From the IMG/VR virus record IMGVR_UViG_3300026885_000046, positions 1-37,535 of that record: a DNA stretch of 37,535 nucleotides; one strand, 5' to 3'. The position numbers and the translations under genes were made by a program. The stretch's first letter is position 1. Every line of letters starts with the position of its first letter. Below the pieces are notes generated by a model, which worked only from the letters and a program-made list of their open reading frames with translations, was not told the origin of the DNA and did no database searches. Positions 33,301 to 35,258 of this stretch are shown one piece after another.

Positions 33301-33477
33301 ATGGAACTCAAATTAAAGTGGAACGTCAAAACCATTCGGAAGTCTAATGGGAAAGAAGTCCAAGTTTTTTACATATCTGTGCCCGCAAAGGTAGCTATTT
33401 TTTTAAAAGATCTAGACCCGTATCTAGACATAGAGAAAAAAATCATAACGTTTAGAGGTGGTGAGAAAAATGAGTGA
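33301..33477 (+). CDS. Small protein (58 aa), possible AbrB/SpoVT-like regulator
   Basis: MELKLKWNVKTIRKSNGKEVQVFYISVPAKVAIFLK...; not in the track; overlaps the start of the next gene. Confidence 0.65.
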   Translation: MELKLKWNVKTIRKSNGKEVQVFYISVPAKVAIFLKDLDPYLDIEKKIITFRGGEKNE

Positions 33478-34501
33478 AAAAGAATTAATGTTATTAAAAG
33501 ACTTAGTGAGGTACAGAGACGATATAATAAAGCTTAGAGTATCTCTGGGGAACAGAATAGGTGCAAAGAAAAACGGAAACGGTTGGACATTTAAGAAAAG
33601 GTACAGTATTTGCAGTAACAAGCACGCTGTATTGTTAAAAGAAGATGAGAAAAGGGAAAAATGTCCTATCTGCGGTAGTCCGGTAGAGATTGTAGAAGAA
33701 GAACCGTCACCGGAGCTTATACAACGTTTCTATGACCTACTAAATCAGCAAGAATTAGTAGAGGGGCTTATCGCTAATGAGGTTACGAAGTTTCCGGAGT
33801 TCGAATATCACCTAGCTTTCATCAAGGGGATAGGTCCTGCAAACGGTGCAAGGTTAATAGCTTTAGCGTTTCCACCACAATTCGGGTATGACGTTAATAG
33901 GTTCAGGAGTTACTCAGGATTAGCAGTGATGTTTCAATGCCCTAAGTGCGGATACTGGCAGTATGCAAGAAAATCATCAAATGGACGACCTGCAGTTCCA
34001 TCTGAGGAGGGTTGGAAGTGTCCAATAGACGGTACAAAGCTTATAGGTACTGCAGCAAAAAATGTACCATTTAACAGAGAAGTTAAAACGTTTCTGCTCG
34101 GAATACTAGCAAATAGCTTAATATTAGCAAATGGTGTTTATGCTAAACTTACGAAGTCATTCAAGGAAGAGGTTGCAGAAAAACATCCTGATTGGCCAAA
34201 GCGTAGGGTTCAGATGACTGCCGAAAGGAAGACAATATCTGTGCTAATATCTAATCACTTTGCAGTATCATTACATTATAGGGAGGGAGTACCGTTATCT
34301 GAGACTTATAAAAGAGTTCTTGGAAAAGAGTACGAAGTATTGAGAAAACATGAAGACTTCATCGAAGTACCGTTAACAGACTATTATGTTGACGTCAAGT
34401 CGACAAGCTATAAAGCGAAATTCGAAAAAGTAATTAAAGAGTTAGGAATTAACAGGGACGAGGTGATAACATGGCTTAAGAAGAAGAAAATAATCCAATA
34501 A
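33470..34501 (+). CDS. TasA-like protein: IS110/Nop-type RNA-binding domain, no RuvC, two Zn-ribbon insertions
   Basis: Coiled coil LKDLVRYRDDIIKLRVSLGNRI; IKGIGP, RSYSGL, FNREVK, YAK and AERK as in the Transposase_20/Nop fold; no N-terminal DEDD domain; abuts a dual-repeat array. Confidence 0.82.
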   Translation: MSEKELMLLKDLVRYRDDIIKLRVSLGNRIGAKKNGNGWTFKKRYSICSNKHAVLLKEDEKREKCPICGSPVEIVEEEPSPELIQRFYDLLNQQELVEGLIANEVTKFPEFEYHLAFIKGIGPANGARLIALAFPPQFGYDVNRFRSYSGLAVMFQCPKCGYWQYARKSSNGRPAVPSEEGWKCPIDGTKLIGTAAKNVPFNREVKTFLLGILANSLILANGVYAKLTKSFKEEVAEKHPDWPKRRVQMTAERKTISVLISNHFAVSLHYREGVPLSETYKRVLGKEYEVLRKHEDFIEVPLTDYYVDVKSTSYKAKFEKVIKELGINRDEVITWLKKKKIIQ

Positions 34502-34505
34502 GTAA

Positions 34506-35258
34506 AACAAAGGAATTTCTCAATAATTTCACCTTTGCACACCAGCAAGGGAGTACCTTTAGATTTAGATAATGTATAATATGCACGGTAGCAAAGTCCT
34601 TACTTAATAATGGACAGCATGCACATCAGCAAATAAGGATGTCAATAAATACAAATCTGCACAACAGCAAGATCATTACTCAATAAGGGGCAACATGCAC
34701 ATAAATATAGAAGGACTCAACAAACTCACTGTTGCACAGAAGCAAGCCTTTTACTCACTAATAATCGAAATGCACATAAGCAAGAAACTAACTCAATAAA
34801 GTAACTCTTGCATATAAGCAACAAATATCGTCAATAAAAAGTTGGATGCACACAAGCAAACAAGGCATTTAATAATTGAAATCTTGCACATAAGCAAGAA
34901 AACCTCTTAATAATATGTAGACTGCACATAAGCAACAAAAATGATCAATAATGTATATTCTGCACACTAGCAAGAAAAATATTCAATAAACTCCGCACTG
35001 CACACAAGCAAGAGCAAGAATCAATAAGTCTAATCTTGCACACTAGCAAGATCTGCACAGTAGCAAAAGTGGTGATCTAATAATCGCTCTATTGCACATA
35101 AGCAAGAAAAAAGTTCAATAAAATTTAAAATGCACACTAGCAATAAAGCGATTCCATAATTTAGCTATTACACATCAGCAAAATTGTTAATTTGATAAAA
35201 GTAATATTGCACACCAGCAAGGGGTTATTTCAATAAGGCGTCCCGTGCACATCAGCAA
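34506..35258 (+). ncRNA. TIGR-like dual-repeat guide-RNA array 1 (20 edge repeats, 38-nt period)
   Basis: TGCACAnnAGCAA at 34536, 34582, 34620, 34658, 34696, 34733, 34771, 34809, 34847, 34885, 34923, 34961, 34999, 35037, 35054, 35093, 35131, 35169, 35208, 35246; loop TCAATAA; paired 9-nt spacers. Confidence 0.92.

Follow-up and report, generated by a model that had tools for sequence, protein, structure and literature searches.

The question raised by the locus studied here is whether a gene for a 343-aa protein and the repeat array that follows it constitute an RNA-guided system of the TIGR-Tas family, to which class of that family they would belong, and what their guides would be directed at. 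The locus lies in IMG/VR contig IMGVR_UViG_3300026885_000046, which was analysed whole (37,535 nt; hereafter, the window), and 78% of which is alignable at approximately 70-82% nucleotide identity to Sulfolobales virus YNP1 (SYV1). An earlier note, made from the DNA alone, had proposed a TIGR-Tas system, distinct from CRISPR and with a Nop/IS110-related protein, in a Sulfolobales-type virus, and this core claim was borne out by the fold of the protein, by sequence profiles and by the alignment to SYV1. According to our results, the locus is very probably a TIGR-Tas system with a dual-repeat array and a Tas protein of the TasA type, which lacks a nuclease; it is borne by a relative of SYV1, and its guides would direct DNA binding without cleavage. 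This reading is carried by the anatomy of the array, by the fold and homology of the protein, which has no nuclease domain, and by the strict linkage between gene and array.

The array next to the 343-aa gene (array 1; Table 1) is built on a 38-nt unit consisting of a 13-nt edge repeat (TGCACAnnAGCAA), a 9-nt spacer A, a 7-nt loop repeat (TCAATAA) and a 9-nt spacer B. By a script and a pattern search, 20 edge repeats were located between positions 34536 and 35258, 19 of them differing from TGCACAnnAGCAA by no more than two mismatches and one being degenerate (34696), with a spacing of 38 nt in most units. The architecture given in the earlier note (13/9/7/9 partition, 38-nt unit, 20 edge repeats and differing spacer pairs) was confirmed by this parse, its example unit being found exactly at 34771-34808 and no two spacer pairs within the window being alike. 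Allowing at most one mismatch, GCACAnnAGCAA matched the window 30 times against 1.76 expected, and the whole-unit pattern AGCAA-N9-TNAATAA-N9-TGCA matched 20 times against 0.02 expected by chance; therefore, chance is excluded as the origin of the array repeats. The true start of the array is at 34505, 4 nt past the stop codon of the gene (34499-34501), where a 5'-truncated edge (AAACAA) is followed by a complete unit 0 (loop at 34520-34526), and such a truncated edge with a complete first unit is the general opening of TIGR arrays (TIGR discovery paper, 2025). In total, the array comprises 21 units adjoining the stop codon, with some irregularities: unit 1 has 46 nt and lacks a proper loop, the 34696 unit has 37 nt and a decayed edge, a 17-nt stub is present at 35037-35053, and two units have 39 nt.

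For comparison, we used 12 IMG/VR loci encoding a homologue of the protein (the contig of the window and 11 others) plus Acidianus tailed spindle virus (ATSV). An information profile was built from the 207 distinct units (of 243) of the related loci, and it displayed high information content at unit positions 1-6, 9-13 and 23-29 and values near zero in both 9-nt spacers, which confirms the 13 + 9 + 7 + 9 partition; as exceptions within the spacers, spacer A begins rich in A and spacer B does not end in G. Across these units, then, the spacers are hypervariable while the repeats are near-invariant. With respect to the box D and box C motifs that edge and loop share in TIGR-Tas and that make the guide pseudo-symmetric, each repeat begins with U and finishes in AA (UG...CAA in the edge, UC..UAA in the loop), and the halves of the edge are able to pair (UGC with GCA), whereas the loop, whose second base is variable, has no equivalent Watson-Crick pair. 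The array RNA is weakly structured (z = -1.7), as would suit an array of the dual-repeat class but not one with stem-loops, and no Rfam family was found anywhere in the window.

The protein encoded by the gene, henceforth Tas, belongs to phrog_33543 (unknown function), and the ATG start that yields 343 aa is supported by the alignment of homologues. Its 71 close homologues (60-89% identity) are all unannotated or mis-named as zinc-ribbon proteins; a Pfam scan of Tas and its neighbours returned zinc-ribbon noise only, and a single-sequence phmmer search of Tas against the PDB gave no matches. With a profile of the Tas family, the sole PDB match was 9mty_A (E 9e-5), the cryo-EM structure of TaTasR from the TIGR discovery paper, and the same narrow profile gave no match to SpTasH by hhalign (probability 0.3). 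An exhaustive HMMER search yielded 310 remote relatives, and a broader profile, made of the family plus these relatives and required to reach TasH, matched TaTasR (2.8e-46), TasH (2.3e-28) and IS110-family recombinases (~2e-4) in the PDB. Furthermore, the NCBIfam model NF052498 (TIGR_Tas_endo) matched Tas at E 3.2e-10 over model positions 4-211 of 215; two of the remote relatives exceed the curated cut-off of this model, and beside one of these (L032) a TIGR array built on other repeats was found. The AlphaFold2 model of Tas (pLDDT 89.7, pTM 0.83) gave concordant results, its best 21 Foldseek matches in the PDB being exclusively TasR, TasH, IS621 and ISCro4, with TasR and TasH on top at a probability of 1.00. 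The C-terminal fold of the Nop/IS110 kind that had been predicted for this protein was thus found, the significant PDB matches being only TasR, TasH and IS110-family recombinases, in agreement with the sequence profiles.

The domain boundaries of Tas were mapped onto the published partition of TaTasR (bioRxiv 10.64898/2026.09.09.750476), and Tas is thereby divided into two coiled-coil helices separated by a tip zinc ribbon, followed by a Nop domain that contains a wedge zinc ribbon (Table 1). Both helices are long and were predicted with a pLDDT of ~90, helix 2 aligns to coiled-coil helix 2 of TaTasR, and it is through this coiled coil that the modelled protein would dimerise. Tas begins two residues before helix 1, its residue 81 aligns to residue 140 of TaTasR, and no RuvC or HNH nuclease domain was detected in it with Pfam or NCBIfam; since it starts at the coiled coil and has neither domain, we assign it to the TasA type. 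The tip ribbon occupies ~50 residues where the tip of TaTasR has 3, and the wedge ribbon ~50 aa where the wedge loop of TaTasR has 21. Dual-repeat Tas proteins normally keep a compact Nop core (bioRxiv 10.64898/2026.09.09.750476), and this zinc-ribbon clade is an exception to that rule; wedge zinc ribbons were also seen in some of the remote Tas relatives. With regard to guide processing, the published Tyr/His dyad is located on a C-terminal loop (Y289/H296 in SpTasH; bioRxiv 10.64898/2026.09.09.750476), and the dyad Tyr aligns with the invariant Y280 of the family, within a 'PY' motif. The closest out-group homologue, P0072 (37% identity, E 9e-79), is encoded on a JGI 3300005861 contig (L031, gene 640-1698), and no TIGR array was found within the 4.7 kb of L031 sequence examined; either P0072 is a relative without an array or the array is located in another part of that contig.

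The linkage between gene and array is strict: in 11 of the 11 other IMG/VR loci, as well as in ATSV, tas is immediately followed, on its own strand, by the array, and the arrays of the related loci have a common edge repeat and a 38-nt period, usually starting a few bases past the tas stop codon. The ATSV protein, ATSV_B343, has 343 aa as in the window, with 72% identity and a BFVD model of TM 0.99, and its array displays the identical edge TGCACAnnAGCAA, the loop TCAATAA and the 38-nt unit, starting 2 nt past the stop codon. It is composed of 24 very regular units, in contrast to the several decayed or truncated ones of the window, and its spacers are entirely different. This array was annotated as a repeat_region in the 2016 record (KU645528), and the TIGR discovery paper (2025) cites it as a prior sighting and includes ATSV among the archaeal viruses carrying TIGR loci; the supplementary text of that paper mentions no ATSV or SYV1 accessions. 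The suggestion that the repeats of the window may define an undescribed subtype consequently fails, given that the same edge, loop and unit occur in ATSV. Alignment to ATSV is restricted to tas with its array and some short stretches: ~8% of the window, essentially tas and array, aligns to the first half of ATSV, and the remaining genome is unrelated. The module (33470-35258 in the window, 8187-10158 in ATSV, L004) is common to two otherwise unrelated virus types, namely SYV1-like viruses of ~40 kb and a tailed spindle virus of 71 kb, and its distribution suggests horizontal exchange. In SYV1 itself (L003), the operon is as in the window and the repeats are alike. A few guides are shared between diverged viruses as well: the spacer pair of window unit 34961 is identical in a related locus (L018), and units 34733 (34733-34770) and 0 (34505-34535) recur in SYV1 with each half one base different, as in unit 34733, whose spacers are GCCTTTTAC/TAATCGAAA in the window and GTCTTTTAC/TAACCGAAA in SYV1. 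Nearly all remaining spacers differ from virus to virus.

Among the known systems, the TIGR-TasA proteins (FpTasA, MbTasA and BlTasA) resemble Tas of the window in having a solo coiled coil and Nop domain, no nuclease, and guides from an adjacent array. Nuclease-less TasA binds DNA and represses transcription (bioRxiv 10.64898/2026.09.09.750476), and by analogy Tas of the window would be expected to do the same. The characterised repressor TasAs, however, are bacterial and of the stem-loop-array class (bioRxiv 10.64898/2026.09.09.750476), whereas that of the window is archaeal-viral and dual-repeat, with tip and wedge zinc ribbons and a unit of 38 nt instead of 36 nt. The best PDB match by both sequence and structure is TaTasR (PDB 9MTY), a dual-repeat nuclease of a Thermoproteota archaeon whose array also has 9-nt spacers; in line with the description of TaTasR, the edge of the window starts with UG and its halves can form two extra base pairs (UGC with GCA). 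On the other hand, Tas of the window lacks the RuvC domain (~105 aa) found at the N terminus of TasR, the repeats of TasR end in CCA and not in CAA or UAA, and a loop of 7 nt, as in the window, does not have the length for a tetraloop-like loop as in TaTasR. The IS110-family members IS621 and ISCro4 have in common with Tas a Nop-like RNA-binding C-terminal domain with a GIGP helix-hairpin-helix motif, but Tas has no DEDD RuvC or Tnp domain, the locus has no transposon ends and carries an array of many guides in place of one bridge RNA, and the similarity is marginal (E ~2e-4 to 7e-4). An IS110 transposase was rejected, as NF033542 matched at E 7e-4 over the Nop part only and the N-terminal catalytic domain is missing; CRISPR-Cas, characterised by one repeat of 25-36 nt with similarly sized spacers and by cas genes, was also rejected, considering the two repeats of 13 and 7 nt, the 9-nt spacers and the lack of a cas-like open reading frame (ORF) in the locus. 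Of the features that define TIGR-Tas, by contrast, the locus has a Nop-type Tas protein, the coiled coil and an adjacent dual-repeat array with 9-nt spacers.

As for expression, an archaeal TATA-box-like element, CTTTTTAAG, lies in the short intergenic stretch past the stop codon of the upstream ORF, is invariant across five related viruses, and constitutes a candidate promoter of the operon. It precedes a 58-aa ORF that matches phrog_18276 (unknown function) and gave no Pfam or NCBIfam match; its model has a beta-beta-alpha-beta-beta topology (pLDDT 79) with no significant Foldseek match. An AbrB-like regulator, with which such a topology is compatible, was rejected for want of statistical support. 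The ORF is kept only in the window, L008, L009, L018 and SYV1, that is, in the SYV1-like subgroup, while an unrelated 45-aa ORF replaces it in ATSV and ATSV-like loci and a 306-aa ATPase does so in three other loci; as other ORFs stand in its place elsewhere, it is not an obligate Tas partner. The designation of this ORF as a small regulator is no more than a guess; it has no family or fold match and accompanies tas only in that subgroup. Given that the 58-aa ORF overlaps the tas start and that the array abuts the tas stop, it is plausible that the three are on one transcript; array 1 is probably co-transcribed with tas, and a T5 tract downstream of it is a possible archaeal termination signal.

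Taken together, these elements suggest the following mode of action for a nuclease-less dual-repeat system. A promoter upstream of 33301 would drive a single transcript including the 58-aa ORF, tas and the array. The Tas dimer, formed via the coiled coil, would bind through its Nop domain the conserved ends of the edge (UG...CAA) and of the loop (U.AAUAA), and the precursor would be cut inside each edge, probably around its two variable central bases, releasing 38-nt guides composed of a 3' half-edge, spacer A, loop, spacer B and a 5' half-edge. Each guide would lead the dimer to DNA complementary to both 9-nt spacers, and the outcome would be binding that blocks transcription or replication, and not cleavage, because of the lack of a RuvC or HNH domain. 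RNA-guided DNA binding without cleavage is thus the most likely function, and the system would most plausibly serve the virus in competing with related viruses or in regulating genes.

The window carries a second, orphan array (array 2) that the earlier note had overlooked, with no tas gene beside it. It is located in a segment (~20.5-22.9 kb) that by nucleotide alignment has no counterpart in SYV1, and an array scan of SYV1 found the tas-linked array only. An A/T-rich TATA-like element upstream of its first edge, TTAAAAATAAAAAAG, is a candidate independent promoter, and array 2 would supply extra guides in trans. In L009, too, a second small array occurs (L009 14541-14705), ~3.5 kb beyond the tas gene, and the ATSV record contains a second repeat_region (KU645528 11703-11992), annotated as 'possible viral CRISPR locus', which lacks the TGCACAnnAGCAA edge motif.

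The natural targets of TIGR systems are unknown (TIGR discovery paper). Following the rule established for TasR, in which the spacers lie on opposite strands with a gap of 0-2, protospacers (spacer A with the reverse complement of spacer B, in either order) were as numerous in the window, SYV1, ATSV and the related loci (~285-324 kb) as control arrangements. Pairing with both DNA strands, which the earlier note gives for the TIGR-Tas architecture, is for this locus an assumption taken over from TasR. Regardless of orientation, perfect co-occurrence of both 9-nt halves within 25 nt was observed three times, whereas permuting the spacer pairings gave an expectation of 0.5-0.6 (P = 0.025 and 0.036), and no further perfect matches emerged when two additional IMG/VR scans were included among the targets. 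In one case, spacers B and A of an L009 unit (~11237) form an 18-mer identical to window positions 23306-23323 (+) with a gap of 0, inside an 89-aa ORF (23227-23496, -), and the orthologous site of L009 itself has 4 mismatches. Another involves a guide common to the arrays of the window (unit 35093) and L018, with its target in an L018 intergenic insert (7979-8003), laid out as spacer A, 7 nt and the reverse complement of spacer B, i.e., with the halves on opposite strands. That insert (7957-8030, ~72 nt) is A/T-rich and promoter-like, lies between a TFB-like gene and a 77-aa ORF, and is absent from the window. In the remaining case, array 2 unit 21607 of the window matches SYV1 38126-38157 (reverse complement of B, 14 nt, reverse complement of A), within the orthologue of a 130-aa ORF of the window whose own copy has 5 mismatches, as counted by eye. 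The three geometries disagree, and that of the L009 guide does not fit the TasR rule; when up to two mismatches were allowed, the same-strand class with B before A numbered 146 against 115 +/- 12. We consider the candidate protospacers and this excess as a lead only, their statistics being weak.

That lead would fit arrays of the ATSV/SYV1 type serving as weapons between viruses, with guides that perfectly match orthologous genes of co-circulating relatives and mismatch the carrier's own copy, an idea that we regard as rather unlikely. Their geometry might then depart from that of TasR, either with both spacers on one strand or with half-sites ~7 nt apart accommodated by the enlarged zinc-ribbon wedge; if true, natural targets would thereby be identified for a TIGR system for the first time. 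An analogous role may be that of the mini-CRISPR arrays of Sulfolobales viruses, which are virus-borne short guide arrays matching close relatives and not the carrier itself, although their repeat/spacer architecture and protein are wholly different and they depend on host Cas proteins.

Several observations weigh against a TasA-type system that binds DNA. The edge (13 nt) and the loop (7 nt) each fall 1 nt beyond the 8-12 nt of the TIGR family description, and the loop repeat cannot form the box C/D pair known from TaTasR. The NF052498 score of Tas (40 bits) is below the curated cut-off of 100 bits, which the SpTasH control surpasses with 119 bits. The position of the dyad His is taken by an invariant Lys (K286), the nearest invariant His being H294, and guide processing may rely on a variant catalytic pair of Tyr with Lys or with the distal His. 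The absence of protospacers obeying the TasR rule in excess of control arrangements also counts against it, in a sequence set of 285-324 kb that is too small to test the rule. Finally, we infer co-transcription, the processing site, the 38-nt product, the DNA target and the biological role alike.

Some of these points bear on the nature of the target. The guides could act on single strands (mRNA or single-stranded DNA), with both spacers on one strand, in which case the ribonucleoprotein, instead of binding both strands of DNA, would silence genes of competing viruses by an antisense mechanism, in the manner of a box C/D sRNP. In two of the three perfect matches (those of the L009 guide and of the array 2 guide), both spacers are complementary to the coding sense of a gene of a related virus, the carrier's own orthologue being mismatched, and the excess of same-strand B-before-A sites, though mild, is in line with this. 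Nevertheless, there are three perfect matches only, with an overall permutation P of 0.02-0.04, the two same-strand matches are unlike in order and gap (B.A with gap 0 versus reverse complements of B and A separated by 14 nt), and the mRNA orientation of both is expected by chance at 25%. Moreover, an 18-bp helix is hard to span with a 7-nt loop, all characterised Tas proteins target DNA, and TasR is inactive on RNA substrates, so that we judge action on single strands to be quite improbable.

Binding of DNA could, alternatively, be followed by cleavage, whether because the zinc ribbons at tip and wedge have an activity that was not recognised or through a recruited host or viral nuclease, which would speak against the function preferred here. 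These insertions are large (~50 aa each) and strongly conserved: their C/H/D ligands are invariant, as is an SSNGxPA loop, and they need explaining in view of the compact Nop core that is the norm among dual-repeat Tas proteins. Yet no nuclease motif or family match was found with Pfam or NCBIfam, the Foldseek sub-matches of the insertions are generic zinc ribbons with E >0.8, and wedge ribbons are also present in other Tas relatives and are more simply explained as thermostabilising or DNA-contacting elements; we deem cutting very unlikely. An array of DNA-level iterons or centromere-like sites bound by a zinc-ribbon protein, and not a source of guides, would agree with regular short repeats placed beside a putative nucleic-acid-binding protein, in an array that is known here from its DNA alone. 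Such sites would hardly account for a protein with the Tas/Nop RNA-binding fold, for arrays that invariably adjoin the tas stop codon on the downstream side, in the orientation of the gene, or for fixed-length hypervariable 9-nt spacers between fixed repeats, which are the signature of a guide array; in addition, homologous arrays yield processed guides in the three TIGR systems tested. This last explanation has, in our view, a nearly negligible probability, and a guide-dependent, nuclease-less Tas that binds DNA is retained as the best explanation of the locus.

The features of the locus, of its neighbouring genes and of the related viral loci are listed in Table 1. Elsewhere in the window, a 1410-aa ORF (1927-6159, +) aligns to a SYV1 gene annotated as a putative SbcC-like exonuclease and contains repeats at 3238-3801 and 4206-4475, comprising Gln-rich 75-nt tandem repeats and a 135-nt duplication of 96% identity.

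Table 1. Location of the features of the TIGR-Tas locus, its surroundings and its viral counterparts (positions refer to the window unless an accession or residues are given).
Feature	Location	Strand	Remarks
Archaeal TATA-box-like element CTTTTTAAG	33271..33279	+	GAAAA before it; ~26 nt upstream of first ATG
58-aa ORF	33301..33477	+	Overlaps tas start by 8 nt (ATGAGTGA)
tas gene	33470..34501	+	343-aa TasA-type TIGR-associated protein
TIGR array 1, dual-repeat type	34505..35258	+	5'-truncated edge and unit 0, then 20 edge repeats
T5 tract	35307..35311	+	49 nt past last edge repeat; within 3' end of convergent ORF 35269-35817 (-)
TIGR array 2, orphan	21481..21759	-	7 units, edge and loop repeats as in array 1; degenerate final edge
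A/T-rich TATA-like element TTAAAAATAAAAAAG	21795..21809	-	36-50 nt upstream of array 2 first edge
Coiled-coil helix 1	residues 3-29		Tas protein; from model and TaTasR partition
Tip zinc ribbon	residues 30-80		Tas protein; C48, H52, C65, C68
Coiled-coil helix 2	residues 81-105		Tas protein
Nop C-terminal domain	residues 106-343		Tas protein
Wedge zinc ribbon	residues 154-201		Tas protein, inside Nop domain; C157, C160, C184, D187
TFB-like transcription factor	30460-31473	+	Neighbour gene; SYV1 annotation; phrog_20431
Short DNA-methyltransferase-like ORF	31705-32085	+	Neighbour gene; phrog_111
DnaA-like/AAA ATPase	35798-36574	-	Neighbour gene; phrog_5484
ATSV_B343 and adjacent repeat_region	KU645528 8198-10146		Acidianus tailed spindle virus
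SYV1 tas gene ALG97163 and unannotated array	KP282679, array 39652-40847		Operon includes 58-aa ORF and TATA-like element

The locus of the window is a real TIGR-Tas system and a further member of a known family, and it does not represent a new kind, because the identical ATSV module was annotated in 2016 and cited in the discovery paper. It is distinguished by a unit of 38 nt that results from 13- and 7-nt repeats, by zinc ribbons inserted at tip and wedge, by a variant dyad, by the orphan array 2, and by candidate targets in sibling viruses. It adds to the family a well-preserved and presumably thermostable nuclease-less dual-repeat system with 21 + 7 guides, and with its tip and wedge zinc ribbons its clade breaks the stated rule of a compact Nop core for dual-repeat Tas proteins. 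Together with the 11 related loci, ATSV and SYV1, it provides comparative material including ~200 distinct spacer pairs, and since these relatives co-occur in the same hot springs, the natural targets of their guides may be findable.

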